Source: Histomonas meleagridis 2922-C6/04-290x (Eukaryota > Protista > Parabasalia). From it: DNA of 64,000 bases. The stretch is from contig JAANOX010000270.1 in assembly GCA_020184695.1 (NCBI GenBank), forward strand, positions 89,659-153,658. Reading direction: 5' to 3'. Shown in pieces: positions 6,831 through 48,617 of this stretch. Each line of letters starts with the position of its first letter. Position 1 is the first letter of the stretch. Made by a program: the position numbers and the translations under genes. Under the pieces are notes generated by a model. That model saw only the letters and a program-made list of their open reading frames with translations, ran no database searches and was not told where the DNA came from.

Positions 6831-8725
6831 TTATTTGATTAGGGAACTTTTATCAATTCCTTCTTGTTCAAGAAGTAATTTAACGATTTCTGTATAACCA
6901 TTATCAGATGCATACATAAGTGCTGTTTGAAATATTTCGAATAATTTCCAAATATTATTTTGAAATATAAAATTATTAAAATAAATATTAAATAAAACAA
7001 ATAAATATTTTGAGCATCCATATCAATTCCTTCTTGTTCAAGAAGTAATTTAACTATTTCTGTATGACCATTTAAAGATGCATTAATAAGTGCTGTATTA
7101 AATGAATTAAATAATTTCCAAATATTATTTTGAAATATAAAATTATAAAAACAAATATTAAATAAAACAAACAAATATCTTTAGCATTAATATCAATTCC
7201 CTCTTGTTCAAGAAGTAATTTAACTATTTCTGTATGACCATTTAAAGATGCATTAATAAGTGCTGTTTGAAATAATTTAAATAATTTCCATATATTATTT
7301 TGAAATATAAAATTATAAAAACAAATATTAAATAAAACAAACAAATATCTTTAGCATTAATATCAATTCCTTTTTGTTCTAGAAGTAATTTAACTATTTC
7401 TGTATAACCTTTTAAAGATGCCCAAATAAGTCCCGTTCTAAATAATTTAAACAATTTCCAAATATTATTTTGAAATAAGAAATTATTAAAATAAATATAA
7501 AATAAAACAAATAAATATCTTTAACATTAATATTAATACTTTCGTGTTCTAAAATATATTTAACAAGTTCAAAGTTTCCTGAACGTGCTGAAAAAACTAA
7601 AATATCTTTTGGAATTTGATTATGTTGAAGAAAATGTTTAACAAGAAAAATATTTCCAAAGTCTGCTGATACATTAATAATATCATCATTAATTTTCATT
7701 CCTTCTTTTTGCAAAAATGAGAAAATTTCAAAATTAAAATATGAAACACAATTCTTTCCTAATTCTTCCAAAATATTTTTTTTATTTGCGCCAACAATAT
7801 ATTGAATAACATTATTTTCACCAAATTTTTCTAATTTTTTTTCATAAATATATTTGAAGATATCATTTCGTTGAAACTTAATTGCTGTTTCATATGCATT
7901 TTGAAAAGATGAATGATTTTGTTCACATAAATGAATTATTTCTTCATTTCCACCTGCAACTGCATATTGACCTGTATTTGATAAATTTGCACCATTCATA
8001 AGTAAATATTTAAAACATTTAACAGATCCAAAGAATGCTGCATAATTAATTAATGAAGCATAATTATTAACGAAAGAACATCTTTCATAAGGTGATGGTT
8101 CAATTGTTTGATCAAAATCAAAATCTTCTTGAGATGAAATTTCTTGAAGTTTTTCTATTTCATCATTTCGAATTATTTTTGTTATTTCATTTGGGTTATG
8201 TCCATCTTCAATTAATTTTTTATGAAGTTCAAAATCATTCTTTGATAGTTCTTCATAATTATCTGTTATAAATTTAACAGATTCATAATATTCTAAATCT
8301 TTAATTTTTTCATTTGTCATGTATTGAAGAAAATACCCACCATGAAAGTTTATATCCCTAGTGCAAATGTTATCTAATATTTTCTTATCGATTAATTTAC
8401 TTTCAATCATTTTAGTAATCATATAATGGAATTCTTGCCTGTTTTCATTATCATAAAAATGTGCATATATATAAATATCAAAAATATCAATTTCTTTTAG
8501 AAAGCTCATTTCCAATTTTTGAATTTCTTTGAGAAAATTCAAATACAAATCAATTTCTTTCTCTCGCAAAACTAGAGCCGCATGTGTAATTCTAACTATA
8601 AGTAAATTAAAAGAGAATGGATAAGTATTACTAAATTTGTCAACGATTGATTTTGCAGATTGTTCAATATTTTCTTTGTTTAGGTTAAAGATTAAATTTT
8701 TAATAAATAGTAGTAGATCCCACAT
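6831..8725 (-). CDS. DUF3447-type ankyrin-repeat gene A, with four 80-nt spacers (7437-7516, 7267-7346, 7097-7176, 6927-7006)
   Basis: AAFFGSVKCFKYLLMNGA / YAVAGGNEEIIHLCEQ region, then open 90-nt ankyrin modules at exact 170-nt period, ending GIDKSSLIK*. Functional only if the spacers are removed. Confidence 0.7.
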
Positions 8726-9000
8726 CGTATATGGCTGTCAAAAAGGCCTTTCATTCAATTTTTGAATTAACGGTTATTTTAAATGAACGAAATTTATTTA
8801 CAAGTCACTTTTTCAATTTCAATGCGTAAGGAGAACACTGGATATTTCTCTTTAATCTCTTATTCAAATATAGTAAAAGGAGATAAATTGACCCAAATAG
8901 TCAATATTCCGCATAATATTAATCCATCATATCATGACACTCAAGAACCAATGACTGTTGATACATTCACTGTTCGTATTCAAAATTTTGAATTTTAAAT

Positions 9001-9775
9001 AATGATTTTATTGGTTATGCAGCAAACCTTTGAAGATTTTATTAATTTATCATTTTTTGCAAGTAGCACAACAGGATGGGTTACAAAAATATTTATCGAT
9101 ATTATGCCTTAATATTTGTATCCGAAGTATTGTATCATAGGCTTCAGATGAATCTTTACTTCTATTCGTTGATGGGCATCCTTCAAGATGGGATTTTAAA
9201 GCTAATTTAATTTTTTGGTTATTCAATATTGATGTTATTTCATTTCCGGGTCATTGTTCGAATTTACTGCAAATGTTCGATGTTGTCATTGCAAGTCTCC
9301 TTAAAAAAAGAATTAGTACTATAAAAACTCATTTGAACGCTTTTTAAATACATTAAATATAAGTAGCTTAAAAGAATTTCAAAAACTGGATAATTAAGAA
9401 TATTATTAATTTTCAGTTTTATTACAGCAATGCAAGGAACATTAACAACAAAGAATTCTTTAAAAAGTTTCAGTAAAATAGGAATTTTTCCTTTTAATCC
9501 AACTGTCCCTCTTAAAAACTATTATGCAATGGATCCTCCAGAGGTATCTTCAAAGGAGCTACTCTAAACCAAGTGCTAAATGGTTAGCAAGCGAAGAATC
9601 TTTATGTCAAATGATTATGGAAGAAAATAATCGACCAATGACAAATGAAGATTTTTAAATTTCGATACATAGAAGAATGGAAGAACTTAGGAATGCAACT
9701 CTCGAGCAAGTAATTCCATCAACATCAGATCCGGATATACTATGCATTACACAAAAAAACATTTTCAATATTTAA
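9001..9775 (+). mobile_element. Degenerate DDE_1 (pogo/Tigger-like) transposase remnant
   Basis: Fragments ASSTTGWVTK, LLLFVDGHPSR, FPGHCSNLLQMFDV and SFSKIGIFPFNP match DDE_1 consensus blocks (SGW, DGHxSH, PPHTSHLLQPLD, GIxPFNP). Multiple stops and frameshifts; no TIRs identified. Confidence 0.75.
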
Positions 9776-10439
9776 TGAAAATAACTATTTAAATCAATAA
9801 ACAAGTCTGAATTTAATTTTATGTATTTGACGGAATTCAAAAAAAATTTTTTATGTAAAATTAATTTTGTGATTTCGAAAAAATATCAAAAATATTTGAA
9901 ACAACATATGCGCTATAATATCTATTGGGTACTTGCTTTGTTTTGTGAGTAAAAACTATGCAATACATATACAAATAAATTTGTTTCTATAAAGGTCTCT
10001 GTGTTCATACAGTGCATGTTTGGTAATTTATCTTATAGTATGATAAATTCAAAATTGAATCAATAATTGGATAATCTTGTAAATAAAAAAATAAATTTAA
10101 AACCTCTAATTTATTAATAATATAATCCGCAGAGTGCAACGTGTCAAATTATATTTATATGTTGTGGCCTTAATCAACAAATCCACTTGTTGCAATACAG
10201 TCAATGGTTCTGTATTTTCGAAGTCCAATGCATATATTTAATCGGAAATTCCTTTGACAAAAATCATGATTTTTGATAGATTCAATTGTTTAGTATTTTT
10301 TCCTTTTTTCTTACCTAAAGTTTATTCCTTTATAACTACAAATACAGAAATTATTTGATTCATTTAAATAAAAGAAATCTCCTTTTGAAAATTGTTCTCT
10401 GATAAATATTTCCTAAGTTGGCCAACGCATGGGGAAAGT

Positions 10440-10898
10440 GGTGTAGTTGAAATAATAAAATTTTGTGATTTATAAGAAAATTTGGAAAGTATTTTCAATA
10501 TATTTTACTCCACTTATTTGGGTATCTATTAATGGACATAAAAAAATAGTTCAAATATTACTTAAACAAAAAAGCATTGATATTAATGCCAAAAATTTAT
10601 GCTTTTTCTTATATTATATTTATATGAATCTTTTTATATTTCCAAATTATTTTTGAAAACAGCTCTTATAAAAGCAATTGAAAATGAACATGTTAAAAAT
10701 GATAATATTGATATGAATATTAATGATTTAAATGATTTTCATATTAAATATTCAAAATTTTAACATAATTTTTGGAATTTATTAAAATTAAAAGAAACGG
10801 CTCTTATTCATTCAACTAAAAAAGAAAACACAGAAATTGTCAAATTACTACAAAATATAAACGAAAAAAGGGTAAAAAAGAAAATATTTTATGTATGA
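10440..10898 (+). pseudogene. Orphan degenerate ankyrin module/spacer array (locus B)
   Basis: Modules TPLIWVSINGHKKIVQILLKQKSIDINAKN, TALIKAIENEH and TALIHSTKKENTEIVKLL, separated by decayed spacers with TTTGGAA cores. No DUF3447 5' part recognised. Confidence 0.7.
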
Positions 10899-11191
10899 AA
10901 ATGTTTTTGTATTTAAATAGATCCGTCTTTTTTTCAAAATGTTCAACAACACATTACAAAGATACATATTTTTTCAAACGAAATTGATGTAAATTTACCT
11001 TACCAAAATATATGAAGTGATAATAATATTTTTGAAATATTAGAAAATCAAAAAAGACTAGTTCTGATATCTTCCCATTATAACTACGGCTGAATTTCGT
11101 AAGAATAATGTCGTTTTACATCTGCAAAATTTGAATGATAATTAATTTTTTCCAACGTTTAAATATTTAAAAAACAAATTTAAAATATTTT

Positions 11192-13258
11192 TTGCTAAAC
11201 AATTACAGGAGATCAATTGATAATAGTATCAAAAGGATCGTAGTTAGTCACAGGCCTTCTTCTTGTAGGACATCTCTTAAACCAAAAATTTTACCTCTTT
11301 CCTATAAAACTGATATCGACCTTGAAGATGCCCGCCAAGTCTATATAAAAAAATGTGAAGGGCTTGATGTACCAAAAAATGCCAATTCAGAAAATCGATT
11401 TATTGAGCAATTCATGTCATCTATAAAAAATAAATCGTTATTATTTTGTAATCAGGCACTAGGTCCTTTTGGTATTTTAGCGCTTCTTGATATTATTTCT
11501 AAAACAAAGAAATATGTTTTACTTGATTTATCCATGAATCGTGCAATTGATCAAGGTGCATTCTATATTTCGCAATTTCTATCAACAGACCCACCTATCA
11601 TCAGCTTAATTCTCAGGTCAAATTCGATTTCTATTGAAGGATCTATTACTCTTTTTCAAAGTCTTCACCAAAATACACATCTTGCATTTTTAGATTTATC
11701 GGCTATTGATGGGATTGAACGAAATCGCATGGGTACGCAAGGTTGCAAAGAACTTATGGATTTATTACTTGTTAACCAAGTTCTTTCTCATTTAAACATC
11801 TCAATGTGTGGAGTAACCGTTGAAGGCTGCACTTTTTTGGCAAATGCATTATCAAAAAGTTCATCACTTATTTCACTTGACATTTCAGGAAATAACATCA
11901 CTTCACAAGGAGCAATAAATCTTTTTTCTAATGAAGGCTGTTTTGGGAATCTTGAATATCTTAATTTATCTAAGAATCAAATTGGTGATAAATTTTCTAA
12001 TATTTTATGTAAGCAAATATCATTAAATAATACACTTAATTCATTAGACTTAAGTAATAATAATTTAACAAAAATTACACTTAAGAAATTTATAAAATCA
12101 ATTAAAGGGAAAACATCATTACAACATTTATCATTATCGAATAATAAATTAAATGAAGAATGCTCCGAACTTTTATATTGGTTAATAAGTGAAAACAATT
12201 CGCTTTTAAGTTTAAATTTATCCGGAAATATCTTAAAAGATAAGTCAATACTTCGAATATCAGAAGCATTACTTACTAATAAGGCATTACTAAATATAGA
12301 TATAAGCGAAACACGAATGACTGATATAAGTTCAATTACATTTTCGAATGTAATTACACAAAATAAAACACTTCAAAGATTAATACTTAATGGAAATAAT
12401 ATCACTGATAAAAGTGCAATTCCAATTGCAAAATCACTTATCAATAATTCGACGTTACTTCAATTATCACTTAAGAACAACGAAATGAAAGATGAATCAG
12501 CAAATGCATTTGTCGAATCATTAAAACAAAATCAAGTTATTATTGATATCGATTGTGATTTTAATGATTTCTCTTATAAATCTCATTGTAAACTTATTAA
12601 AGCTATTAATGAACATAAGAAAAAGTTGACAATGAATTCTTATATGGCTACAAATAGACGTATTAAAGTATTAAAAGAAAAAGAATTAAAATTGTTTCAA
12701 TTAAAAGAAGATTTAAAAGAACGTTTCGATTCCGTTAAACAAAATCGTTTAGAAAACGAACAAAAAGAAAAAGAAATAAAACAATTTATTGATGAAAGAG
12801 AAAAAACTATAATTGAAAATGGTCAAAAACTTGAACAATTAAAAATTGATTATAATGAAATATGTGAAAAACGAAAACAACAAATCATTGAATATAATAA
12901 ACTAAAATTAGAAATAGATAATGAACAAAAGTCAACAAATAATATGTTAAATGATATAACAACCAAAAAAAATCACGCTAAATATCGATTAAAAAGAGTG
13001 AAAAATAAAAAAAGTGAAGCGGAATTACATTCAAATCATATTATCGACGATTTGAAATTACATTTATTGTCATCAAGAGCACATTTAAGTACTGTAATTA
13101 ATGAAGCAAAAGAAATACAAAAAGAAATTATAAAAGAACAAAAGGAAAAAGAAGAACAATTAATTGAACAACAAAACGCTATAATCGCTGCACGAAACAT
13201 TAAAACGATTAAAACTCCTTTAATGAAAGAAAGAAAGAAATTATCAAAAACAAAATAA
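11192..13258 (+). CDS. Leucine-rich repeat protein (RI/NLRC3-like LRRs) with C-terminal coiled coil; first ATG at 11414
   Basis: Repeated LxxLDLSxNxI units of about 28 aa; K/E-rich heptad C-terminus. Start codon uncertain (TTG at 11192). Confidence 0.8.
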   Translation: MLNNYRRSIDNSIKRIVVSHRPSSCRTSLKPKILPLSYKTDIDLEDARQVYIKKCEGLDVPKNANSENRFIEQFMSSIKNKSLLFCNQALGPFGILALLDIISKTKKYVLLDLSMNRAIDQGAFYISQFLSTDPPIISLILRSNSISIEGSITLFQSLHQNTHLAFLDLSAIDGIERNRMGTQGCKELMDLLLVNQVLSHLNISMCGVTVEGCTFLANALSKSSSLISLDISGNNITSQGAINLFSNEGCFGNLEYLNLSKNQIGDKFSNILCKQISLNNTLNSLDLSNNNLTKITLKKFIKSIKGKTSLQHLSLSNNKLNEECSELLYWLISENNSLLSLNLSGNILKDKSILRISEALLTNKALLNIDISETRMTDISSITFSNVITQNKTLQRLILNGNNITDKSAIPIAKSLINNSTLLQLSLKNNEMKDESANAFVESLKQNQVIIDIDCDFNDFSYKSHCKLIKAINEHKKKLTMNSYMATNRRIKVLKEKELKLFQLKEDLKERFDSVKQNRLENEQKEKEIKQFIDEREKTIIENGQKLEQLKIDYNEICEKRKQQIIEYNKLKLEIDNEQKSTNNMLNDITTKKNHAKYRLKRVKNKKSEAELHSNHIIDDLKLHLLSSRAHLSTVINEAKEIQKEIIKEQKEKEEQLIEQQNAIIAARNIKTIKTPLMKERKKLSKTK

Positions 13259-13323
13259 AAAAAATGATCTTGAAAAACCGTTAAAATATTGTGAAGTTTA
13301 CAAATGTCACTTTTATCACTGCT

Positions 13324-13978
13324 TCAAGTAAATTGTTGTATAATCCATTTAAACATTTCATTTATGCCTTCACCAGTTTTTGCACTTGTTTCAAAATACT
13401 TAGCGTTAAGTTTCGTTGCCATTTCCATTCCTTCTGTCCAAGTCAATTTAGTTACCACATAAACAAACAACTTTGTTAAATTGTGTAAACATTTCATTAT
13501 AATATGTTATATCATTAAATGTTTTTCTGTGCATTAATAGAAAGATTTCTGTCGAGCAATTTTATGTCTAAATCGAAATTTCGATATTTGGGCTCGAATC
13601 AAATAGTTCAATTTTTGTGTGACAAAAATTTTTGATATACATCCAATTGTAGCTAACATCATATATTTAAATCTGTTATGTAAAAAATATTATACAAATT
13701 AAATTTTTGTTGAATAAAAGGCATTGATGAGAAAAAACTTACAAATTTTATATTTTCCTTTTGATTTAAATAGTTCCATTTCCTTTAAATGGTGGATCAA
13801 GGATACATAACTCATAAAGAATACATCCCATCAATCAAATGTCTGTTTTAAAATCATATCCTTTAAAACCAACAAGTTCAGGTGACATGTAGTGTGGCGT
13901 TCCGATGAATGTGTTACATTGTTGATGAACAGTTTCAAGTGTTTTGACATCATCAAGATCACCAATTCTGATTATATC
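13324..13978 (-). pseudogene. Remnant of NEK-like kinase C-lobe followed by a Rab-like small GTPase C-terminal part
   Basis: TFIGTPHYMSPE...YDFKTDI*LMGCILYELCILDPPFKG at about 13770-13975; GN*IDL and YFETSAKTGEGINEMF at about 13324-13470. Stops and frameshifts; 5' end abuts the stop of ankyrin gene C. Confidence 0.65.
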
Positions 13979-13981
13979 ATT

Positions 13982-15975
13982 TCATAATTTATTATTTCCT
14001 TCTTGAAATATTTTAACTAATTCTATATCACCTTTTTCTGATGCATAGGTGAATGCCGTTTTAAATATTACAAATAATTTCCAAATATTCTTTTAAAATA
14101 TCAAATTCTTAAAATAAAATTTAAATAAAACAAATATATGTTTTTAGAATCAATATCAATTCCTTTTTGTTCAAGAAGTAATTTAACTATTTCTGTACGA
14201 CCATTTGAAGATGCCCAAATAAGTGCTGTATTAAATAATCTGAATAATTTCCAAATATTATTCAAAAATATAAAAACATTAAAATAAATATAAAATAAAA
14301 TAAATAAATATCTTTAGCATTAATATCAATTCCTTTTTGTTCAAGAAGTAATTTAACTATTTCTGTACGACCATTTGAAGATGCCCAAATAAGTGCTGTA
14401 TTAAATAATCTGAATAATTTCCAAATATTATTCAAAAATATAAAAACATTAAAATAAATATAAAATAAAATAAATAAATATCTTTAGCATTAATATCAAT
14501 TCCTTCTTGTTCAAGAAGTAATTTAACTGTTTCTGTATGACCTTCACAAGATGCCCAAATAAGTGCTGTATTAAATAATTTAAATAAATTTCAAATATTA
14601 TTTTGAAATGAGAAATTATTAAAATAAGTATCAAATAAAACAATTAAATATCTTTATCATTAATATCAATTCCTTCTTGTTGAAGTAGTAATTTAACTAT
14701 TTCTGTATAACCTTTTATAGATGCTTCCATAAGTGCTGTATAAAATAATTTAAATAATTTCCAAATATTGTTTAAAAATATAAAAATATTAAAATAAATA
14801 GCTTTAGTATTAATATCAATTCCTTCTTGTTCTAAAATATAATCAACAAGTTCAATATTTCTTGATACAGATGAATGAACCAAAATATTCACAGGAATCT
14901 TATTTGATTTAAGAAAATATTTAACAAGATATATGTTACCAGTTCCTGCTGATTCATTAATAATATCATCATTAATTTTCATTCCTTCTGCAAACAAATC
15001 TGCTAATATCTCATAATTACAATATCGAATACATATTCTTCCTAATTCTTCTAAACTAGTAATTTCTTCCAATTTATTTTCATAAATATATTTAAAGATA
15101 TCATTTCGATGAAATTCTATTGCTGCTTCATATGCACCTTCAAATGTTGAATGATTTCGTTCACATAAATGAATTATCTCAAGATTTCCACCAGCAACTG
15201 CATATTTACCTGTTTTTTCAACATTAGAACCATTCATAAGTAAATATTTAAAACATTTAACTGATGAAAAAAATGCAGCATAATCAATTAATGTAACATC
15301 TCTTTTATTAACAAATGAACATCTTTCATAATACGAAAATTTAATAAGCTGATTAAAATCAAAATTTGTTTGTGATGATATTTCTTGAAGTTTTTTTATT
15401 TCATCATTTCTAATTATTTTTGCTATTTCACCTGGATTAACTCCTTCTTTAGCATATTTTTTCTGAAGTTCAAAATCATTCGCTGATAGGTCTTCCAAAT
15501 GAAGATTTTCATTTGTTAATAATACATTTATTTTATTTAAGTATTTCGAAGACATGTAATGCAAAAAATATGGGTCAAAAATATCTTGTACAAGTTTTGG
15601 TTCAACAAAATTTTGTTCAATCAAATTTTCAAGAAAATAAATTGATTCTCTTGTATTTTTGTCAACAAGAAAATTTATGAACACATCGGAAAATTTTGAT
15701 TTATTACCATTGTTTTTTTCTAATATATCAAATTGCTTTATAAAATTGAAATATAAAGAAAATTCATTGTTTTTTAGAGTAAACGCAGTGCATATTAAAT
15801 TACTAATAAGTATGTGAAAAGACAATGGATAATTTTCATCGAATTTATTGATGATTGAATCGGCGCATTGAATAATATTTTCTTCTTTTAGTCCGAAAAT
15901 AATTTTCTTTAAAGATATGAATTTTTCAAATTCATTATAATATTTATTTATTATTTTTTGCTTGCATTGCTCCAT
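13982..15975 (-). CDS. DUF3447-type ankyrin-repeat gene C, with five spacers (14740-14799, 14570-14649, 14400-14479, 14230-14309, 14060-14139)
   Basis: Same architecture as gene A. Start probably MEQCKQK at 15975 (Inr 15982-15986; upstream ATG at 16080 also in frame). Last module TAFTYASEKGDIELVKIFQEGNNKL*. Confidence 0.7.
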
Positions 15976-16519
15976 TGGGATAATGAGGAACAAAATGAAA
16001 TAAACGGTTTCTAAATCAAACATTAAATAGGAAATCCCAACATAAGAAATGGACCTAACACAAAAAATGGTTTGTTCCATCTCAATGTGTGAATAACAGT
16101 TTTTAAATAGTTTTTGCTCTATTCAATCAAAATGAAAATAATTATTTCAAAATTCCGCATTTTAATAAAACATACTTTAGGATATACCTTAATTAACTAC
16201 AACTTAACAGCATATAAATTTTATGATTTTATTTGTGAAGATTAAATTTCAGTCAATCTTATGATTATATATATTTTGATATTATTCCAGATTTTGATTG
16301 TAACTTTGATTTGTTAGCATTCTCTTTTCTCTCACTTTAGTGTACAATTTCTTGATTCTTATTTGTTCAAATCATTTGCCGAAATTTCCAAATTGAATGA
16401 AAAATTTTTAGTCGAACGTTCTAAACTTTAAAATTTTTGTCAAATTCGTTTTCTTTGAAAAGCAAACAAAGCGCCCAAATTTTGTGAGTTTTGTATTGGC
16501 CGGCCATTTTTTAAATCAA

Positions 16520-17326
16520 ATGGGCTCGAAAGAAGAACCCAAAGAGGATTTACCTCAATATTGGGATTTGCTTTCTTGCGCTGACCGAAATGGGTACAAC
16601 AATTTAAAAATGACATTTAATGCAAGCTCAATAAGAAGAAACAGAGGACATGGAATTGAAACATTTGATGGAATTTTAGAAGCAATAAGAAGATATGCAG
16701 AACAAAGAAACGATAATGATTGGAAGCGTTTTTTGGTGTGTGGTGTTTGTTGGATGGATCAAGCTATTGCAATAAATACAAGGCAATTAAGAAAACTTAT
16801 TTCAAAGTGTAAATCATCTATTAATGGTTCCTTACAAAAGCTTGGATACCTTACAAACACTTCTCATTCAGAATCGTGGAAAATTCTTTTTGCTAGAATT
16901 CCTTTGTTAAAAGATAATTTTACTGAAATCAGGCAGTGGACAATACGTTACAAAGTTTCACCGGGAATAGCAATTCAGAATGAAAATACACAGAATAAAA
17001 TTAATCATAAAATTTTAATAATGCAACAGCCTCCAAATATTAATACAGTTGTTCACCCACTCCAAACAGATATGAACTTTATTCAATTTCCAGTAAATGT
17101 ACCAAATGACCCAATTAAGAAAGAAATTTTATCAGATATGAATCGTGAGCAATTTTCACTTCAAAACAACAATATGACACAAATTGCACCTTTAAGACCT
17201 CCATATACTTCAGAACAGCAAGAAGAAACAAAAGAGAAAATTACAAATGTACAACAAATCCAGATTTGCCCACTAAAGTTTCGTGCCAAGTTTATGCAGT
17301 CGGGGCAGGTTAGCGTTAGAAGTTAA
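16520..17326 (+). CDS. Initiator-binding domain (IBD, IBP39-family) transcription factor
   Basis: RFLVCGVCW, IAINTRQL, KCKSSINGSLQKLGY and EIRQWTIR are diagnostic of the parabasalid IBD winged-helix family; low-complexity Q/N/P tail. Confidence 0.88.
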   Translation: MGSKEEPKEDLPQYWDLLSCADRNGYNNLKMTFNASSIRRNRGHGIETFDGILEAIRRYAEQRNDNDWKRFLVCGVCWMDQAIAINTRQLRKLISKCKSSINGSLQKLGYLTNTSHSESWKILFARIPLLKDNFTEIRQWTIRYKVSPGIAIQNENTQNKINHKILIMQQPPNINTVVHPLQTDMNFIQFPVNVPNDPIKKEILSDMNREQFSLQNNNMTQIAPLRPPYTSEQQEETKEKITNVQQIQICPLKFRAKFMQSGQVSVRS

Positions 17327-17537
17327 TCCTGTGTTTATATTTTTCGAAATAAATTATATTTTCGATATTTTTTTATGATCATAAAAACCCATTCTTCAAC
17401 TTCTAGTAATATTAAGAATTATATGGATTTGTTTCTTTTTGTGTTTTACATGATTTTTTTATGCAAAAATTTTAAAAAAGTGACAATATTTAGAGGTTTT
17501 GACACATCAAATTTTTGATGTTTATATTAATAATCAA

Positions 17538-19979: not shown

Positions 19980-20002
19980 AATTTTTAAAGAAAATAACAG
20001 AT

Positions 20003-23437: not shown

Positions 23438-26382
23438 TTATTTACCAGTTCTGAACATTTTCCTATATGCGGCCTTCATTTGCCCTTTATATCTTTTATT
23501 AACAATTTTCGATGATAAAGGTGCAAATGCGAAAGGCCTTTGTCCGCTTTTTTGGTTATCGCCTTTACCGTTCTGTGTCTTAAATCGTTTACCACTTTCA
23601 GCCACGAATGCGTTTTCGATACTTTTCTTTTGTTGTTCTTTTTGTTTCAATTTTCTCTTCTTAATATGTTCTGCGATTTCATTCACTCCGTCTGATTCAT
23701 CACTTTCGTCGTCACCATTTTTCATTTTTTCGTTTTTCTTCGGCGCCTCTTTCAGCACAAGTCGGCCTCTTTTATCGAATTCGAGTCCTTCGTCCTCTAA
23801 GTTCTGTGGCTGATTCATTATTCGTTGTACTGTTTCACGCGGATCATTTAAATCGTGGACATCTTCGTCATATCTACTGTCTAATTCGATGTCATTATCA
23901 TCGAAACTTTGCGTTTCATCTGTTTTATTATTTCGACGTCTTAAGTTCTTATTCACTTCTTTACGCGCATTACGTAAAAGTTTCTCTTCGTTAGGTGGGA
24001 AACATTCAGTAACTTTCTCTATGCCAAACATTGATATGCATTTCTCTATTAATTTATGTCCTTTTCCTTTAATTTCCCAATTTGTCTTTTTACTAGAGTT
24101 AATTCCAAGTATTATCATGTTGCCAAGTTGCGAAGATTCAACAAATTTCGGTAATCGAGAAATTAATGTTTTCGAAAATTGTAATGCACTACGAAATACT
24201 TCTGATGTCGGATTAGAATCAGTTGCCTTGAAACATATCAAACAAAATTGTCCGAGGTCTTCAGGGTTAATATTTTCTGCAAATTTGTTTATGATACATT
24301 CAATGGCGTCAATTGTAGCACTTACAAAATTACTTGAATTTGATGCTATACCAACAGATATATGTAATAACAATGGAGTTAATGATTGTCCTCGTTTTAT
24401 GAAATCACTTGCAATAGTATTAATACATTCATTAGCTGCTTCACGTGTTTTTGCTCCATGTTCTTTTAATGCTCCAACAATTTCTGGTAAGAAACTATTT
24501 AACATTTCATCATAATTTTCTGTGTTCGGTATTTGTAATAATGTTAACATTAATAATAATCGATAACGTAATGTTGATGATGATTGAACTTCTGTTGTAT
24601 TATTTAATGCATTAAGTAACTCAGTTGTAACTGAAGGATTTGGAAACTTTTGGATATATGTACGTAATGAACGAAGTGCCTTTTACGAATTAATGAGCCA
24701 AAAAATGCATTAACAGAATTTTGATCCATTAATGAAGCAACAACAGATATTGCCGGAATTACACATGATGCAGTGGATGGATCAACAGAAGCATTAGCTA
24801 ATGAAATTAACATTTGTTCATGTCGATCAGTATATGGAGCAATGATTTGTATTATTTTACAAATCGGTCGATATAATTCTAATTTGAATTCTTCAAATCG
24901 ATTTAATACTAAGTCAACAAAACCTGAAATATCAGTTAAATTCGTTGTGCAACAATTTGGTATAACATTCCATAAGTTTTGCCATAATATTCGAGATGGA
25001 TCTTGTCGTAAGTTTTCATACATTTCTTCTTCAATAGGTAATAAATAATTAAATGTGAATGTTAAATCATTAAGATTTTTCCCATTATAAGATTTTAAAA
25101 TTGGAATTACAATTGTTTCTAATATATGTAAATCACTAATAGGTACTTGCGCTTTCTCAAAAAACTCTGTAAGTCCAATAGCTTCAGCACAACTTACAAT
25201 AAAATTAACAATCATTGTGAAATGAGTTGAATCAATATTTGTCATTTTATCAAGTGATGCAGTAATTGGAGCTTGTAATACTTCGAATGTATTTTCTCTT
25301 GTTTTTTCAGGAATTGTTTGTAATATAGAATATACTTGTGGCCAAATGTTAATAAATTGTACACTCATAGTTTGTGTAAGTTCATTTACAATTGGTACAA
25401 ATGCATTTAAATCGCCATCCGAAACAGTTGCATGAATTCCATATAATATTATGTTATTAATTAATGTTTCACATTCTTTGTCATTCATTGTTAAAAATAT
25501 TAATAATTGATGTAATATTCGTGGAAAATTAAATTTAAGAACTTGAAGATCTGAATGCGCTAACATAGTAACACATGATTGTATTAATTCACATATTGCA
25601 TATAATATATCTCCTGCTGATTCTGGTTTAGATGAAATGTACTTATTAATAATACTAATGCATGTGTCAGTAGGCATATAATGAACTGCATTTGATAAAA
25701 CTTGAATCGCTTTAACTTTTGTCGCATGATTTGGACTTTCTGTATATTGGATAACTTTTTCAATGTATTTGGGCCAGATTTGACTGTTAGCGACATGTGA
25801 AATATTATTAATGACTGTTAATGCTCGAAGTGGATTTCGATCTATGATTTCAAACATATAACTAAAGGCTATTCCATGAATTTGTGTAAAATCATATATT
25901 GCTTGTGAGGCACTATTTCGAAGTCGAGAGTCATCACTAAGAGAACGTTGGCAAAGTCTTGTACATACATCTCGAACCATCGTGTCAGACATTGAGGAAT
26001 GTTTTGATAATTGAACAAGAACTGGACACATGGGTATTGAAAGTTCTGTAGAACAATTGGAAAAAAGTGGTACAAGAGAACTAAGAAGATGTGATGAAAT
26101 AGTTGAATCAAGAGGTGCTGATTCAAGTGCAATATGAAGAAGTCGAAGTAGTTCAGGAAGACCATCTATTTCTTTTTTATCAAGTCTATGAACTGTAAGA
26201 GATGTGATTGCACCTAAATATACAGAAGCTGATGGATATGGGTCAAATGAAAGTGTCCCTTGATTAACTTGATTTTGAATTGAAGATCTAACAAGATCTA
26301 ATATTTGAATAAAGCGCTTTTGATTTCTATCATTTCTAAGACATTCATAAGCAGCAAAAATATCAGTATCAGAACTTGTCAT
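23438..26382 (-). CDS. RRP12: RRP12-like HEAT-repeat ribosome biogenesis protein, single -1 frameshift at the A4 run 24681-24684
   Basis: Two long HEAT-like ORFs join if one A is added (CGT AAA AAG GCA). C-terminus GKGDNQKSGQRPFAFAPL...NKR is RRP12-like. Confidence 0.75.
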
Positions 26383-26691: not shown

Positions 26692-28160
26692 TTAATGTAT
26701 TATTTCTGTATGACCTTTACCAGATGCTAAAATAAGTGCTGTAATAAATAATTTAAATAATTTCCAAATATTATTTTGAAATATAAAAATATTAAAATGA
26801 ATTTCAAATAAAACAAATAAATATTTTTAGCATTAATATCAATTCCTTCTTGTTCAAGAAGTAATTTAACTATTTCTGTATGAACTTTTGAATATGCTTT
26901 AACAAGTGGTGTATTAAATAATTTCCAAATATTATTTTGAAATATCAAATTATCAATATAAAAATTATCTTTAGCATTATTATAAATTCCTTTTTGCTTT
27001 AAAATGTATGTAACAAGTTCAATATTTCCTGAAAATAATTTTGATATAATATTTTCTGGAAGTTGATTATTTTTATGGAAATATTTTACAAGAAAAATGT
27101 TTACAATTTTTGCTGCTTCATTAATGATATTTTCATTAATTTTCATTCCTTCTTTTTCTAAATATGTAAAAATTTCAGAATTAAAATATGAAACGCATTT
27201 TTCTCTTAATTCGTCTAATTGACTAATATCTTCAAATTTATTTTCATAAAGATATCATTTTGATGAAACATAATTGCAGTTTTATATGCATCTTCAAATG
27301 ATGAATGATTTTGTTCACATAAATAAATGATTTCTTCATTTCCACCTGCAACTGCATATTTACCTGTATCAATTTTATTTGCATTGTTCATAAGTAAATA
27401 TTTAAAACATTTAACTGAAGAAAAAAATGCTACATAATCAATTAATGTAACATTGTTTTTATTAATAAATGAACATCTTTCATAAGTTGATTTTGGAATT
27501 ATTTGATTATAATCGAATTCATTTTGTGATGATATTTCTTGAATTTTTTCTATTTCGAATTATTTTAGTAATTTTAATCGGATTATGTCCTTCTTCAATT
27601 AATTGTTTATGAAGCTCAAAATCATTATTTGAAAGTTGCTTAATGTTTGCAATGGTTTGTTAAAAAAAATAAATGTTATCTCGTTTTTAATTTTCTTCTT
27701 TAGACAAATAGTGGATAAAATATGGATTTAACATATCTTTTAATATTTCATGATCAATAATATTATTTTCACACATTTTATAAAGTATATGATTTATTTC
27801 TTGATCAAGGATTCCTGAATGATGAAGAAAATTAGTAAAAACATCAAAAATTTGAGATTTGACTTTATTAATATCTTGAAATATTTCAATTTCATTCATA
27901 AATTTTAAAAATATATCAAAATCATTCTTTGCAATATAAATACATATAACAACAAAATGACTCATAACTAATATAGTTTTTTTTCTTTTAAACTTTTTTA
28001 AAAGAAAATCTTCTTTTAAAAGAATATGGGGAAATATAGTCAATTATGGAAATAATTAATTGAACTACTTGAAAAATATTTATTTAAGCCAAATATGATT
28101 TGTTGAATTGCTTCAATGACTATTCATTTAATTTATTCTTGAGTTCTGTATTAATTGCAT
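26692..28160 (-). pseudogene. DUF3447-type ankyrin gene D, frameshifted in the 5' part, two spacers (26913-26966, 26743-26822)
   Basis: Homologous blocks (FSSVKCFKYLL, YAVAGGNEEII) in several frames; last module truncated at TALILASGKGHTEIIH*. Confidence 0.75.
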
Positions 28161-30050: not shown

Positions 30051-30155
30051 AATGATTTTGGTTGCGTGGCAAAAAAGACGTTAACAAAATATTTTCAGTA
30101 ATGAATAAACTATTCAAATAGTATGGGACTTGTGATATGAAATTATATACAGAAA

Positions 30156-41900: not shown

Positions 41901-44900
41901 ATCATCAACAAAAATAATTAAAACTCTTTCAGAAAGAATTCTTGAATTGTCTGAAATATATTTAATAATATCAAAAACTACTTTAGATGAAATTTTAGCG
42001 CAATCAATAATTAAACAACTTACAAAAATGTTACATGGCTTAGAAGGACTTTCTGTAATTTTACTTGATCATCATCTATATAATAAAGCAGGAAATTTAT
42101 TAATATCTATTTCAAGATGTATATGGAAGTTACAACATTGTATTTATGAAGATCATAAACATAATCGTTTAATGATACTAATTCAGAACTCAACTACAAA
42201 AATTAATGATTTAGCTCATGATTTAACTGATAAAGATTCTGAACATGATTTAGTTAACTCATTATTTTTCATATCGAAAGAAATTAGCAAAAATCAAGAT
42301 CCAAATCGTTTGATACATTTTTGTGATGGGTTTTATCAATTATATTATAAATATAAGCAAATCGATGTAAGATATCAATTTATGGATATAATTAACTCAA
42401 TTGAACTAATTGTATCACGTTTATTATCAAAACCTTATAAATATTTCCCACAAAATATTTCGAATTTGATGAATTTCACAATTAATTCATATGATGATAA
42501 TAATTTATTTTCAGGATCATCAAGATCTTTAAGATCAATTGGGTTTTCAGATTCTTCTGATGATGAACATAATGAAGAAATTATACGGAAAAAATCATTA
42601 ACTTCAAGATATCAAAGTGACGAAGTACAAATTGATTTATACCCAATACAATCACAAATTGAAAAAATTCGTCCTTCAATATTACTTGATCCTAAAAATA
42701 CAGTAAATCGAAAACCTAATGGTCCACATGTAACATTTGATTTATCAAAAGATAGAAATGCGCCAATTTTTTCGACAAGTACTTCATTGTTTGTTGATGA
42801 AGCTCCACCTGAATTATTACCTCATTCTGTACCTTCCATTTATAGGAATAGTTGGAATGTACAATTATTTTCTCGGACTTTTAAAGTTCCTGATTATACA
42901 AACAAAAATAAGCGAAATTCTACATCTAAATTAAGAAGAAAATATATGAATTTAGAAAAATCATTTGATTTACTTTTAATACCTGAAAATATTAATGTGA
43001 AAAATAATTCTATTTATTCATCCAAAGATAAAGCTGAAGAAGATATTAATATTATTAAAACTCAAATTGAAGAATTGGAAAATAAATTTGATAATTTACA
43101 TAGTTTTACTGAAAAAGTATTTTTAATTGTTGATAATTTGCCTTTATTAAATGATATATGTTTACGTAATCAATCATTAAAATCATTTAATATAATGACT
43201 ATAAATGAATTATATAATTCTATTCGAAATAAATTAAATACTTTTGTTAAAAATATTATCGTAACTAATAATTATATTTATCCATATGAAAATCTTAAAA
43301 ATATTGACGTTTTAATTGATTTATTATTAATTGCATTAGAAAAAGCAAAATCGTATTCATTGTCTTGTAATCAAGAAATTCAAGATATTATAAGATCTTC
43401 ACTTTATTCAAAAGAAGCAAAGAAATCAATTCAAAGTTTAATTAATACAGAAGATCATTTATTAGTTTTATTTGTTAATGATTATATTAAAATACTTTTA
43501 AATAATTATTTAATATTTGGTAAATATACGGAACAATTAGATTCAAATGCACATAATAAAATTAATATTATTAGTATAATACAAACTCAAATTTGTAATC
43601 AATTAAATATCATTTATAGATTCATTAAAAAACTGAATTTACAAAAAAATGCTCCAATTTCTAAAATTACAAATATAATTTCATCAATTAAATCAAATGA
43701 AATTTCGGAATTATTAGAAAAAATTAATAACTTTTTACATGAAAAAAATATGCAATATAGTCAAGCAGATAAATATTCAGTTGAACTTAAATTATTTTCT
43801 AAAACTATATATAAGACAAATCAAAAATTATTTTGTTTAATATGTCAACTTAATTATTATCTTTTATCAATTAATTTTATACCACCTAATCATGAAGAAT
43901 TATTAACACAATTAATAAAAAATAGTATTAAAAATATTGTACAAATTATTCAAGAAATTAAACAAAACTCGAGTAAACTTGATACGAATTTTTCACATAC
44001 AATATGTAATGCTTGGTCTAAATTTTTGGCTGATGTTAATGGTAATATGACAAATTTACAATTTGTTGCATCTGTAGCGATAAATACAAAATCTAGATGT
44101 GATCAATTATTAAGTTATTTGAAAAACATTTCAAAAGAAATTTGTATTTTGGAAGATAGCGCATTTCCTTTTTCACCTTTATCAAAATATTCATTATTAG
44201 TAATTGATTTAGAAAAGGCAATTGATTATTTGAGTTCGACAAATCAAGAAAAGAAAATTGAAGTTGAAGAAATAGAACTTCCAAACATTGAAATTAAGAA
44301 AATTAAGAAGAAAATTATTATCGAAAAAATTATTTATATCGAAAACCATAAATTAATTTTAAAAAACATTAAAAAAGTTAATAATGAAAATATTAAAAAT
44401 ATAAATTTATATAAATTATTTAAACAACAAATTAAATTCTTTGGTAGAGAAATACAAAATTCATTAAAAGTTAATCATCATGTTATTTTAATGATATGTA
44501 ATCAAATGATTTCAGTATTACAAAACATTGATAATGAAAAACTAAAGAAAATTGTTCAAAATCAAATAAAAATTCTTTCAACAACAATTCGAAATCAAAA
44601 CAATTATTTAATATGTAAAAAAGATAAAGAAATAACACAAAAATTAAATCTTTTCCTTAATTTTTTAGCTCAAATTACACTTTTTAATTTGTATTTTATT
44701 ACAAATCAAGAAAATAATTTTAATGAATTAAAATTACATTATGATCAAATTAAAGATTTCATTAATTTCGATATACAAAAATTCGAAAACATCGAAAAAA
44801 TAGAAATAGAAATTGAATTATTTGAATCTATAATTAATTCGATTAATCAAAATATAATTAAACCTCAAAACTCATTCGGACTTAATCAATCACAAATTAC

Positions 44901-45591
44901 TATGTTAAATGAACTTAAATTTGAAGATGTGACACCTAAATATATTAAATATGATAAATTATTTAATTATATTCAACCGATGAAAAATTATTTTTATTCG
45001 ATTTTTTGGGAAAGTTCAAAAACTTTCATCAAAATGTATAAATATTTCATCGATGTAATTAATACATTTTCTAATTGTATTTCATATTTAAACATCAATT
45101 TCCTTAATCTGAAAATGAAATCTATCAAAGATTTATATCTTAAACTTAATAAATTACTTGATAACCCAATCGAATTTAATTCATTATACTTCGAAATTGT
45201 GGAAATCTTCGAAAAAATTCATAATAATATTGAAATCATTAAACCAATAATTGAAGCTGAAACAGAAAAACAAAAATTCATCGAAGCATTCGAACTATTA
45301 AAATCGATAAAACAACAATTAAATCCTTTGAAAAATAGATCAATTTATGAAAATATTGCGTTTTACTTAAAAAGATTAAAACATTCATCAATGCTAAAGT
45401 TAAGAACTTCAATGTCACCTTATGAATTAACTGATTTTCTGCTATATATAAAACAATTAATCGATGCGCAAGAGACTGATAGAATTCATATTAATACAAT
45501 GAAAAAATTATATAATTGTATTTTGCCAGGTTTCCCTGAATCGAAAAAGATTAAACAACAAATAAGTGTATACTTACAGAAATCATCTTAA
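38926..45591 (+). CDS. Giant (about 2220 aa) protein with N-terminal talin-like FERM domain and helical body
   Basis: 6.7-kb uninterrupted ORF. Ubiquitin-like F0/F1 segments (KTKVFKINPGLPVKNLI), ERTYSLTRDFVISG and FINSARSFPTFGSHSFYVK resemble FERM F2/F3. Confidence 0.6.
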   Translation: MAKLKLKVKVLPKSEEPKEMKFKETSSRAKVLKKISKEFNDPLILKSFVMLKRSKEDYICFEKNTKIDILNPQNGMKLIIYKNHFPIKVKSPDNKTKVFKINPGLPVKNLIFHFAKKLNIKYYLGYTISLINKQQIQYLDENLPVCVQNPKFSRFSFGINYYFIMDKDTENSTSLERTYSLTRDFVISGLSELQPENYILLCAQISIIENYSKIETIINSNDSALLLQYLPERLQSDLNSEEDLFDEVKSFKIEELQQMKINFINSARSFPTFGSHSFYVKYSNSQTLPYIYLCIDYKGIILVQKSNLTVIKRFEYNDFSLKIKENKLIINESDELIVENPNRIKQLIDGYCYLNSILKDHLVNEQNLEELIYHQNKTTDDIELEQLIPVKFNIEDAISYQTFTFMNDKIFLNSDELKICGNTDLNAIKQLQFVISNDLKFTKDFDYDYDDLMNDALKLESTLKNINFKYSLFELNENYGNELRSALFFISLIEEKDENLFKNLSKIYKEIKIKIESKIIGFHYKKLCPPRNMNIKEHLKNVLQTIPNIIKLIDEANNQNNEFQSKTYNELTELLKTITTILTNIPEENDEITFVKYKKKFYEFKNDLINLIPIIAFFDLLNSTKISGLLSTIYDDLESSLIYLTSFMIPKTNVSDVFIGIQTIIEKSIRLYNKNSEQNSSKFFVFLSEMIPILQSKIPNWDTRYIKRTFLQSVDDILLQYQDYIHENDFLLKNLILLTRYFLKNVPKSSIYENQKDLSTLKEPKEPRRKVRGFKINDEIIKDDEIEISLNDINSLNLDEFNPSKSSSDSIFNEFIQDFNEISPITLKNIYLFLVKWKPKLIKINVEPSSFKYIKSIYDSCLKLLKFNAERQEQFQTPFMLIKKALFHANNISSDKNELKDFLTDLQNHFSDITLIRNSAKIEKFLNNLKEIEDKSISVLSLCNIFTKLLEYISLFSKHSNYNSLDILNELKVIQNNAKEIYRVILEAQCNESSTKIIKTLSERILELSEIYLIISKTTLDEILAQSIIKQLTKMLHGLEGLSVILLDHHLYNKAGNLLISISRCIWKLQHCIYEDHKHNRLMILIQNSTTKINDLAHDLTDKDSEHDLVNSLFFISKEISKNQDPNRLIHFCDGFYQLYYKYKQIDVRYQFMDIINSIELIVSRLLSKPYKYFPQNISNLMNFTINSYDDNNLFSGSSRSLRSIGFSDSSDDEHNEEIIRKKSLTSRYQSDEVQIDLYPIQSQIEKIRPSILLDPKNTVNRKPNGPHVTFDLSKDRNAPIFSTSTSLFVDEAPPELLPHSVPSIYRNSWNVQLFSRTFKVPDYTNKNKRNSTSKLRRKYMNLEKSFDLLLIPENINVKNNSIYSSKDKAEEDINIIKTQIEELENKFDNLHSFTEKVFLIVDNLPLLNDICLRNQSLKSFNIMTINELYNSIRNKLNTFVKNIIVTNNYIYPYENLKNIDVLIDLLLIALEKAKSYSLSCNQEIQDIIRSSLYSKEAKKSIQSLINTEDHLLVLFVNDYIKILLNNYLIFGKYTEQLDSNAHNKINIISIIQTQICNQLNIIYRFIKKLNLQKNAPISKITNIISSIKSNEISELLEKINNFLHEKNMQYSQADKYSVELKLFSKTIYKTNQKLFCLICQLNYYLLSINFIPPNHEELLTQLIKNSIKNIVQIIQEIKQNSSKLDTNFSHTICNAWSKFLADVNGNMTNLQFVASVAINTKSRCDQLLSYLKNISKEICILEDSAFPFSPLSKYSLLVIDLEKAIDYLSSTNQEKKIEVEEIELPNIEIKKIKKKIIIEKIIYIENHKLILKNIKKVNNENIKNINLYKLFKQQIKFFGREIQNSLKVNHHVILMICNQMISVLQNIDNEKLKKIVQNQIKILSTTIRNQNNYLICKKDKEITQKLNLFLNFLAQITLFNLYFITNQENNFNELKLHYDQIKDFINFDIQKFENIEKIEIEIELFESIINSINQNIIKPQNSFGLNQSQITMLNELKFEDVTPKYIKYDKLFNYIQPMKNYFYSIFWESSKTFIKMYKYFIDVINTFSNCISYLNINFLNLKMKSIKDLYLKLNKLLDNPIEFNSLYFEIVEIFEKIHNNIEIIKPIIEAETEKQKFIEAFELLKSIKQQLNPLKNRSIYENIAFYLKRLKHSSMLKLRTSMSPYELTDFLLYIKQLIDAQETDRIHINTMKKLYNCILPGFPESKKIKQQISVYLQKSS

Positions 45592-45764
45592 TTGTTTAAA
45601 CAAAAAAATGTTTTTATTTTTTTTTATTTAAATTGTGATTAAAAAAAACATTTCATTATATATTTATATTTCAATTTTTTTTCTTAAATTGTGTTGCTAT
45701 AAACATATCATTAATATATATTAATAAGAGCACTAATAAAAAAAAATAATGTATTAAAGTTTAC

Positions 45765-48617
45765 TTATGAACGTGTACTTAAATATAGTTTGAAAGGATT
45801 TTCGTTTTTTCCACCTTTCTCCTTAATTAGATAAGCTAATCCAGGCAAATCAAAAGAAGTTGCATACATATAAGCTGTTTTAAAAAATTCGAATGATCAC
45901 CAAATATTATAATTAGGTATGGAATAGGTAATTAAAAAATTAAATTAACTATAAGAATATCTTTTGCATTAAGATCAATACCTTTTTGATCAAGAAGTAA
46001 TTTGACTATTTGTATTTTACGATTTTTCATTGCTATTAAAAGTGCTGTTTCAAATGAATTTAATAATTTCCAAATATTATTTTGAAACATAAATTCAGTA
46101 AAACAAATTTTATATAAAGCAAATAAATATTTTTAGTATTGATACCAATCCCCTTTTGTTCAAGAAGGAGTTTAACAGTTTCTATTTCATCATACATAGA
46201 AGCATTAATAAGAGCTGTATTATAAAGTAAGAATAATTTCCAAAAATTTTAACGAGATTTCAAATTTTAAAAAATAATATCAAATAATGAAAATAAATAT
46301 CTTGAGCATTAATAACAATACCATTTTGTTCAAGAAGCAATTTAACAATTTCTTTATTACCATTTTCAGATGCAAAAATAAGTGCTGTTTTATATATTAT
46401 AAATAATTTCCAAATATTATTTTGAAATAATAAATTATTAAAATAAATATTCAATAAAACAAATAAATATCTTGAGCATTAATATCAATTCCTTCTTGTT
46501 CAAGAAGTAATTTAACTATTTCTGTGTAACCATTTTCAGATGCACAAATAATTGCTGTTTTAAATAATTAAAATAATTTCCAAATATTATTTTGAATTAT
46601 CAAATAATACTTTGAAGTTCTAAATTATTAAAATAAATATTCAATAAAACAAATAAATATCTTTAGCATTAATATCAATTCCTTCTTGTTTAAGAAGTAA
46701 TTTAACTATTTCTATATGACCATTTAAAGATGCCCAAACAAGTGCTGTTTTAAATAATTTAAATAATTTCCAAATATTATTTTGAAATACAAGTTTTAAA
46801 TAAAATAAATAAATATCTTTAGCATTAATATCAATTCCTTCTTGTTTAAGAAGTAATTTAACTATTTCTATATAACCATTTTCAGTTGCAAATATAAATG
46901 CTTTTTCAAATATATAAAATAATTTTCAAACATTCTTTTAAAATTTCATATAGTAGAATTTAACATGTTAAAAGCAAAATAAACTTTAATATCATCATTT
47001 ATTTTAATTTTTTCTTGTCCAAGAATTGACTTGACAATTTCTGTAGAACCATAATAAGATGCATATGTAAGAGCTGTAAAAAATATTTTTTTTAATTACC
47101 AAATATTATTTTAATATACCAAATTGTTAAAACAAATATTGATTATAAAAAATTAATATTTTTAGCATGAATGTCAATTCCTTTTTGTTCAAGAAGTTGT
47201 TTAACTATTTCTGTATAGCCTTTTGAAGATGCTAAAATAAGTGCTGTATTAAATAATTTAAATAATCTCCAAATATTATTTTGATATATTAAATTATTAA
47301 AATAAATTTCAAATAAAACAAATAAATATCTTTAGCATTAATATCAATTCCTTCTTGTTCAAGAAGTAATTTAACTATATCTACATAACCATTCCGAGAA
47401 GCTATTACTAATGCTGTTTGAAAAAAATTAAAAAAATTTCAATAATTGTTTTGAAATATTATTTTATTAAAGCAAATATTATCCTTAAAATTGAAATCAA
47501 TTCCATCTTGTGTAATAATATATTTAATAAGTTCAATATTTCCTGACATTAATGATTGAATTAAGATATCTTTTGGTATTTGATAATTTTGAATAAAATA
47601 TTTAACAAGATACAGATTTCCAAATTTTGCAGATTCATCAATTATATATTCAATGTTATTAATTAAATCTTTTTCCAAAAAGAAAAGTATGATGTAATTT
47701 CCACAATGAATACATTTACTTCCTAAATTATTTATATTTTCAAATTTTTCAAATTTATTTTCATAAAGATATTTAAAGATATCATTTCGATGGAATTCAA
47801 TTGCTGTTTCATATGCATCTACAAATGATGAATGATTTTGTTCACATAAATGAATAATTTCTTCATTTCCACCTGCAACTGCATATTTACCTGTGTTTTC
47901 TACTTTTGCGCCATTCATAAGTAAATATTTAAAACATTTAACAGATCCAAAAAATGCTGTGAAATCAATTAATGTAACATTTTCTTTGTTAATAAATGAA
48001 TATCTTTCATAAAGTGATGGTTGAATTGTTTGATTAAAATCAAAATTTGTTTGTGATGATATTTCTTGAAGTTTTTCTATTTCATCATTTCGAATTATTT
48101 TTAAAATTTCATTCGGATTAATTCCTTCTTTAATTAATTGCTTGTGAAGTTCCCAATCATTCTTTGAAAGTTCTTCATAATTTTTGATTAAATAATTGTT
48201 AAATGGATCAATAATATTAACTTTATTTTGTTTTTCTGTTTTATAATGAGCAAAAAATTTTGTTCTAATTTGGTTTACAATATTTATATCAATTAAATTT
48301 CGCTGAACCATTTTTTCAATTAAATAATATGCTTCTTGTGATTTAATTTTCGAAATAAAATCACCAAAAAATTTAATAATTTCTTGATCTTTTGTTTGAA
48401 TTGTTTCCAAAAATTTTATATAAATGTCAGTTGAATTCTTTTGCGAACAAAATGCATAATATAACAAGTTAGTTAAAACAAAATTAAATGAATATGGAAA
48501 ATTTGGCTGATGCATATCAAATATTTCCCCAATTGATTTATCAAAATTTTTTTCATCCAAATTAGTTATGACTTGCTCAAGTATGATAAGTGTTTCCTTT
48601 TCATTTGGTTGGGACAT
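45765..48617 (-). CDS. DUF3447-type ankyrin-repeat gene E, with ten spacers between 45879 and 47480
   Basis: 5' ORF 47439..48617, then nine open ankyrin modules and a terminal cap TAYMYATSFDLPGLAYLIKEKGG...STRS* (stop 45765-45767). Confidence 0.7.

Follow-up and report, generated by a model that had tools for sequence, protein, structure and literature searches.

Very short spliceosomal introns are known from Stentor coeruleus (15-16 nucleotides (nt); PMC9505925), from the Bigelowiella nucleomorph (18 nt) and from Trichomonas vaginalis, whose type B introns measure 23-25 nt (PMC12316389). These tiny introns keep GT-AG ends and a branch motif (TCTAAC in Trichomonas), and parabasalid introns in general are very short, with 3' sites set by fixed spacing from that motif (PMC12316389). 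Introns without GT-AG ends occur in nuclear genes of euglenids, where the cut sites of the nonconventional introns are set by spacing from internal signals (PMC12501133, PMC6221363). Here we analyse a 64,000-nt stretch of the genome of the parabasalid Histomonas meleagridis 2922-C6/04-290x (contig JAANOX010000270.1, positions 89,659-153,658; hereafter the window), in which genes of an ankyrin family carry AT-rich spacers between their ankyrin modules. We conclude that these spacers are very probably arrays of 17-nt micro-introns that are removed at the RNA level. DNA contains the inserts and RNA lacks them, with the reading frame and the ankyrin loop restored. A preliminary description of the spacers had noted no precedent for them, and we likewise found no description of 17-nt inserts in the literature on parabasalid, Histomonas and Dientamoeba introns, on 17-nt introns or on ankyrin.

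Seventeen-nucleotide inserts around single codons

Four loci of the family lie in the window (G+C about 25%), all on the minus strand and where the preliminary description had placed them: gene A (6831-8725), gene C (13982-16080, with the ATG at 15975 as its likely start), locus D (26692-28160) and gene E (45765-48617). Pfam matches to Ank_2 and DUF3447 in gene A, to Ank and DUF3447 in gene C and to DUF3447 in the open reading frame (ORF) 27218-27559 of locus D, together with the Pfam assignment of gene E, identify them as members of a parabasalid DUF3447 ankyrin protein family, whose nearest named homologues are the 'caskin' paralogues of H. meleagridis assembly GCA_020186115.1. Tandem Repeats Finder reports 170-nt tandem arrays at 6851-7564, 14054-14800 and 45956-47481 and an inner 20-nt period within the spacers. 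The motif ATAATATTTGGAAATTATT, allowing up to three mismatches, is matched 24 times against about one match expected, and 22 of the 24 matches fall inside the ankyrin loci. Rfam gave no match in the window.

Counted from the D codon to the T codon there are 21 spacers, and their lengths are those first reported: 15 measure exactly 80 nt, the others 54, 60, 63, 66, 83 and 100 nt. Every spacer except one decayed copy in locus D can be parsed as a multiple of 17 nt plus whole codons. An 80-nt spacer is four times 17 nt plus one codon, with three lone codons between the inserts and the fourth joined to the next exon. For example, a spacer that follows KD, holds AAT, TAT and GGA singly between 17-nt inserts and ends in CAA joined to ACA GCA reads D-N-Y-G-Q-T-A, and insert removal restores the consensus ankyrin hairpin/loop D-x-x-G-x-T. 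Spacer 46049-46128 of gene E illustrates the layout in coordinates: its inserts occupy 46112-46128, 46092-46108, 46072-46088 and 46052-46068, AAA (46109-46111), TAT (46089-46091) and GGA (46069-46071) stand as single-codon exons, and GAA (46049-46051) is fused to the exon that follows. The product KDI(L)FxTAL that had been anticipated from the spacers is not borne out; the parse gives KD-x-x-G-x-TAL, as in KD-NYGQ-TAL.

The other lengths follow the same scheme. The 60-nt spacer is 3 x 20 and the 100-nt spacer 5 x 20, the latter with an evident copy of the third unit; 63 and 83 nt are one extra codon plus 3 x 20 and 4 x 20, and 66 nt is 17+9+17+3+17+3. In the 100-nt case (46559-46658, minus strand) the duplicated 20-nt unit, an insert with its codon, produces the five-residue loop NRDGK, which is direct evidence that loops lengthen by one codon at a time.

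In gene A, exon 1 (8725-7517) is followed by four 80-nt spacers within 6927-7516 (7437-7516, 7267-7346, 7097-7176 and 6927-7006; loops YLGR, NYGQ, NYGN and NYGQ). Gene C has five, spanning 14060-14799: one of 60 nt with three inserts (14740-14799, loop YGY) and four of 80 nt (14570-14649, 14400-14479, 14230-14309 and 14060-14139; loops DLEN, YYGN, YYGN and KDGK). The stop ATT TAA previously noted at 14644-14649 is real. Gene E has ten, spanning 45879-47480, at 47418-47480 (63 nt), 47248-47327 (80), 47078-47157 (80), 46905-46987 (83), 46749-46814 (66), 46559-46658 (100), 46389-46468, 46219-46298, 46049-46128 and 45879-45958 (80 each). Deleting the inserts in silico leaves open frames of 540 amino acids in gene A (16 inserts, stop at 6831), 591 in gene C (19 inserts, stop at 13982) and 729 in gene E (39 inserts, stop at 45765). 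With all 74 predicted inserts gone, no stop or frameshift remains, and the conceptual spliced products are regular stacks of 34-residue ankyrin repeats.

Locus D, whose two spacers measure 54 nt (26913-26966) and 80 nt (26743-26822, intact, loop EYGI), is probably a decaying copy or pseudogene and not a working gene, because only 8 nt are left of the last insert in the 54-nt spacer and a stop cuts the last module short. An orphan piece of the ankyrin repeat, fragment F (10465-10860, plus strand), is also decayed; it lacks the N-terminal domain, and its spacers no longer parse as 17+3.

For the analysis of insert signals we assembled 110 inserts (84 distinct) from the window, from a second H. 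meleagridis locus (L008) and from three metagenome contigs (L001, L005 and L007) that represent relatives at 46-49% protein identity. All 110 are exactly 17 nt long, despite diverged sequences, some of them richer in G+C; overall their A+T content is about 91%. No stop occurs among the 110 codons directly after an insert, although stop triplets account for 6.5% of the triplets within inserts. Among the 84 distinct inserts the first base is a purine in 82 (A in 62, G in 20), and the 5' dinucleotide is AT in 45 and GT in 15. T occupies position 3 in 76 and position 4 in 76, A stands at position 14 in 67 and somewhere in positions 9-14 in 83, and the last base is T in 76, with TTT at the 3' end in 63. 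Aligned with one another, 17 spacers show no gaps inside.

The difference between repeat units is 0.10 at the insert signal positions, 0.22 in the insert middles and 0.33 in the single codons, which are the most variable; the loop Gly codon is kept and varies synonymously (GGA, GGT, GGG). Framework residues of the 90-nt exons either do not vary or differ only by synonymous changes, and variation falls at the usual variable ankyrin positions. As had been claimed, the 30-codon modules are free of stops and show synonymous variation, the first Thr codon being ACA 15 times and ACG once.

Inserts in DNA and RNA contigs

Contigs of three presumed RNA runs and one DNA run were aligned to positions 44500-49950. 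The DNA contigs span the spacers unbroken (for example 45982-46087, 46065-46345 and 46848-47214) at a depth of 586-658, that of single-copy flank. Zero-mismatch RNA contig pieces from the diverged gene E, 74-140 nt long, end at the predicted insert edges 45882, 46051, 46128, 46221, 46985, 47081 and 47477, and a single extra matching base is explained by the 17+3 model in each case. One RNA contig of 237 nt (X6 record 26) bridges a spacer, matching 45978-46051 and 46128-46221 with 0 mismatches and carrying 8 letters between them; in the model the insert bases span 77 nt, first to last, with 9 kept letters, of which 1 is absorbed by the alignment and hence ambiguous. RNA-only joints skip 76, 79 or 86 nt and keep 8, 11 or 18 letters, so that on balance 68 nt, or 4 x 17, are lost every time. 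The kept letters decode in frame to the loops RNG, KNR, GNRG and GRSG, for instance within D-R-N-G-K-T and K-G-N-R-G-N-T from expressed paralogues, and the DNA run contains no contig for these joints. The inserts are in genomic DNA but not in mature RNA, and are therefore cut out of the transcript.

The preliminary description had proposed that each spacer holds a non-GT-AG intervening sequence to be removed as one block of 68-71 nt. The RNA-only joints uphold the removal and place it at the RNA level, one of several mechanisms then put forward; the single block gives way to four separate 17-nt units. Partly processed forms are present as well. One contig (X6 record 27) retains insert 47081-47097 although splicing has taken place at the following spacer downstream, and an unspliced form (X6 record 28) occurs at a low depth of 4.4; spliced forms far exceed the unspliced form in the three RNA runs. 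From the one partly processed contig and the existence of arrays of 3, 4 or 5 units we infer that the inserts are removed unit by unit, independently of each other.

Several points weigh against RNA-level removal. The RNA evidence consists of assembled contigs from one alignment, not raw reads, and the runs are only presumed to be RNA. Counting of joints in the DNA run was incomplete owing to very heavy coverage, so that their absence from DNA is not airtight. Many of the RNA joints stem from paralogues, the family being very large, and the bridge specific to gene E gives the number of kept letters (8), not their identity. The ratio of nonsynonymous to synonymous differences between modules (pN/pS), about 0.8-0.9 overall, is by itself no proof of purifying selection; an overall ratio is uninformative on its own for repeats that diversify their binding face. 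No enzyme is known that would explain units of 17 nt that lack AG and are separated by 3-nt exons. If the A at position 14 served as the branch point, it would lie only 3 nt from the 3' end, below any spliceosomal distance from branch to 3' splice site known to us.

The rival that survives best, and one we consider highly improbable, takes the interrupted loci for dead tandem repeats and attributes the spliced-looking RNA to uninterrupted paralogues or retrocopies elsewhere in the genome. The family is indeed very large, with summed depths in the hundred-thousands, the loop letters at most of the listed joints differ from the gene E locus, locus D and fragment F are decayed, and pN/pS is high enough to fit. 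This explanation does not account for the zero-mismatch gene E contigs that halt at insert edges, or for the one that bridges a spacer with the predicted 8 letters. Nor would dead repeats be expected to yield neither stop nor frameshift once 74 inserts are removed. The joined form was not seen in the DNA run, every DNA copy read carries inserts (L008, L001, L005 and L007), and annotated H. meleagridis paralogues such as protein P0012 end at the first insert.

Programmed excision from the DNA of some nuclei, with RNA copied from the processed DNA, is more improbable still. The inserts are short, AT-rich and precisely excised, and in this they superficially resemble the internal eliminated sequences of Paramecium. 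DNA contigs nevertheless retain them at single-copy flank depth and no joined DNA form was found, contradicting bulk excision from DNA, which the preliminary description had entertained. Bounding by TA, which marks the ciliate segments that are absent from somatic DNA, is possible in just 6 of 69 inserts, and the partly processed RNA forms also argue against it. Nuclear dualism is not known from parabasalids.

Equally improbable is an origin of the joints in cDNA synthesis or assembly, such as template switching of reverse transcriptase between short repeats. Of 102 cut-site contexts, 22 show 0 nt of microhomology and 49 show 1 nt; none shows more than 4 nt, and in 22 the cut position is unambiguous. 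Jumps between the similar ATTT motifs at the two insert ends, which together with the very AT-rich RNA make the idea worth raising, would produce deletions of 13 or 20 nt instead of 17. Every product regains the frame and the Gly at the correct place, spliced forms greatly outnumber unspliced ones in three runs, and De Bruijn contigs are unable to invent junction words. Translational bypass, in which the inserts stay in the mRNA and the ribosome skips them, has precedents in phage T4 gene 60 and the yeast mitochondrial 'byps' and had been suggested for these spacers, yet its probability is next to nil, given RNA contigs without inserts and the great inefficiency of making four hops in each repeat and as many as 39 in one protein.

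Signals, known intron classes and machinery

For each intron class with which we compared them, the inserts lack all the defining features that could be tested. Like tiny spliceosomal introns, they are pieces in the range of about 15-25 nt removed from nuclear transcripts, with narrow lengths and U-rich interiors, and the GT start of 15 of the 84 is shared with them. Unlike these introns, they are mostly A-initial, are invariant at 17 nt and have neighbours just 3 nt away. GT..AG ends, and an AG end of any kind, occur in 0 of 84, and CTAAC, the core of the parabasalid ACTAAC/TCTAAC branch motif that is fused to the 3' AG in U2-type introns, in 0 of 69 inserts and likewise in none of the 84, in agreement with the earlier remark that the spacers lack a CTAAC branch point and a consistent AG. 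The A in positions 9-14 could serve as a branch point but fits no motif. U12-type introns have AT-AC or GT-AG ends, an ATATCC 5' site and the branch site TCCTTAAC; AT..AC ends are found in 0 of 69 inserts, and the logo reads ATTT, not ATATCC. Ordinary introns are also present in the organism, as a conventional Trichomonas-type intron of 94 nt at 729-822 (plus strand; GTATGT ... TCTAACACACAG, found by motif scan) splits a protein kinase gene of the window, with the Pkinase profile at 3-192 in ORF 117-737 and at 223-263 in ORF 859-1626.

Euglenid nonconventional introns are similar in being nuclear, in lacking GT-AG and in having a machinery that is unknown for them too. They differ in varying in length and in not being arrayed around single codons. 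Their signature (5'-N3-CDG ... CH'G-N5-6 before a purine, with paired ends) is matched in neither half by any of 69 inserts, and conserved pairing is not seen. Animal and plant micro-exons likewise go down to one codon, in frame and often in protein surface loops, but they rely on long canonical flanking introns and enhancers, whereas here up to four single-codon exons follow one another at 20-nt spacing. Bulge-helix-bulge introns of tRNA and archaea and the IRE1-spliced introns of XBP1/HAC1 are short (11-26 nt and longer), lack GT-AG and are removed by endonuclease and ligase, a route that would suit 17-nt units. The required folds are not found. The minimum free energy of the spacers is -11.7 kcal/mol against -12.9 for shuffles (z = 0.46), RNAalifold gave 0 consensus pairs on 17 spacers, the IRE1 motif CNG|NNGN occurs in 0 of 102 junction contexts, and the twin stem-loops that accompany it are not predicted. 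Models guided by structure were dropped for want of signal in the single-sequence fold and in RNAalifold. Ciliate internal eliminated sequences and ribosomal bypass elements are, as here, short AT-rich frame interruptions that leave no trace in protein; the former leave the DNA and the latter stay in the mRNA, whereas the H. meleagridis inserts are retained in DNA and missing from RNA.

Recognition of the inserts would thus have to proceed without GT-AG, without a CTAAC branch site and without a conserved fold. We infer that the cues would be the 17-nt length, the 5' purine, U3-U4, an internal A (in positions 9-14, usually 14) and the 3' U-run, conserved features that suggest a length-measuring reaction. 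The single-codon exons encode the tip of the beta-hairpin of the ankyrin repeat, D-x-x-G-x-T, and junction peptides such as DNYGQTALINASLNGHTEIVK would mark the spliced product. Arrays grow by tandem duplication of the 20-nt unit (insert and codon) and of the 170-nt unit (spacer and exon), and this mode of spread explains why inserts are confined to the ankyrin family within the window. A search of other window genes for 17-nt inserts joining adjacent open frames that differ by +2 yielded as candidates gene boundaries, pseudogene fragments and repeats, none of them an insert.

As to the machinery, we slightly favour a strongly diverged spliceosomal reaction, to which we give a little less than an even chance, because the inserts start with G/A-U and offer an internal A, and because parabasalid introns are very short with 3' sites at fixed spacing. 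Against it count the total absence of AG, exons of 3 nt and an A that usually lies just 3 nt from the 3' end. A dedicated endonuclease-plus-ligase system is a somewhat weaker candidate; it suits the insert size but comes without supporting structure. The remaining probability falls to something else. A more specific proposal, which we regard as unlikely, is a non-spliceosomal RNA excision-ligation with a 17-nt ruler, in which each insert is autonomous and codon cassettes at the loop tip are gained by 20-nt duplication and perhaps skipped or retained from transcript to transcript. If true, such a system would be a natural RNA-level counterpart to the diversification of designed ankyrin libraries.

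Relatives, neighbouring genes and significance

The second H. meleagridis locus (L008 2501-4021; GCA_020186115.1, WSYJ01000186.1) shows how the inserts affect annotation. Its annotated protein P0012 ends in '...GIDINAQNI', that is, at the first 17-nt insert, and downstream of this end lie at least four unannotated repeats with the 17+3 loops NLGQ, KSDQ, KIDS and NNGK. All products returned by a protein database search either break off at the first insert or read into it, and a full-length spliced protein was not among them; JGI metagenomes scanned with an N-terminal-domain profile yielded no relatives. A distant parabasalid ankyrin gene (P0018, 34% identity; L002-L004) has normal uninterrupted repeats followed by two T-rich/AT-rich interruptions of 78 and 73 nt (L002 4948-5160, Logan SRR30634793; also in L003 and L004). 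These fit neither 17+3 nor one fixed length and may represent a related system with other rules.

Among the remaining genes of the window, an IBP39-type initiator-binding protein gene (16484-17326, plus strand; IBD domain, E = 3e-44) belongs to a family of parabasalid-specific transcription factors, and the IBD and DUF3447/ankyrin genes are among the parabasalid hallmarks of the window, as is the Trichomonas-type intron. An RRP12-like HEAT-repeat gene (23438-26382, minus strand) consists of two ORFs in different frames, 26382-24604 and 24550-23438; an intron or frameshift may exist near 24600-24680, where no Trichomonas-type motif was seen. A weak GBP/GTPase-like ORF at 6077-6608 (minus strand), whose Pfam match (E = 0.002) misses the curated cut-off, shifts frame near 6270 and may be a pseudogene or hold an unrecognised interruption. 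Pseudogene debris occupies 13300-13960 (minus strand), between gene C and an LRR gene, and includes a fragment of a kinase C-lobe with TGA in place of the conserved Trp and a Ras-family C-terminal fragment (13327-13497). At 55257-56719 a 60-nt tandem repeat (24.4 copies, 95% identity) lies in long open frames of both strands; the minus-strand ORF over it, 55171-56850, has no Pfam match.

The published annotation of the H. meleagridis genome reports no more than one intron per gene (PMC8529796), and its models of family members, P0012 for example, stop where the first insert begins; the annotated versions of a large ankyrin family are therefore truncated. We class the inserts with introns in the broad sense; a non-spliceosomal machinery would make them a new kind. 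If confirmed, they would be among the shortest nuclear introns known, at 17 nt, and would form the densest intron arrays, with 3-nt exons and up to 39 introns in a 2.9-kb gene, in a class to which no known splice-site rule applies. The spliceosome would then be able to work without AG and with hardly any exon between introns, or else a parabasalid would possess a second nuclear pathway of RNA excision. It is precisely the ankyrin contact residues that the inserts bracket, which raises the question of whether this layout serves loop diversification in the family.

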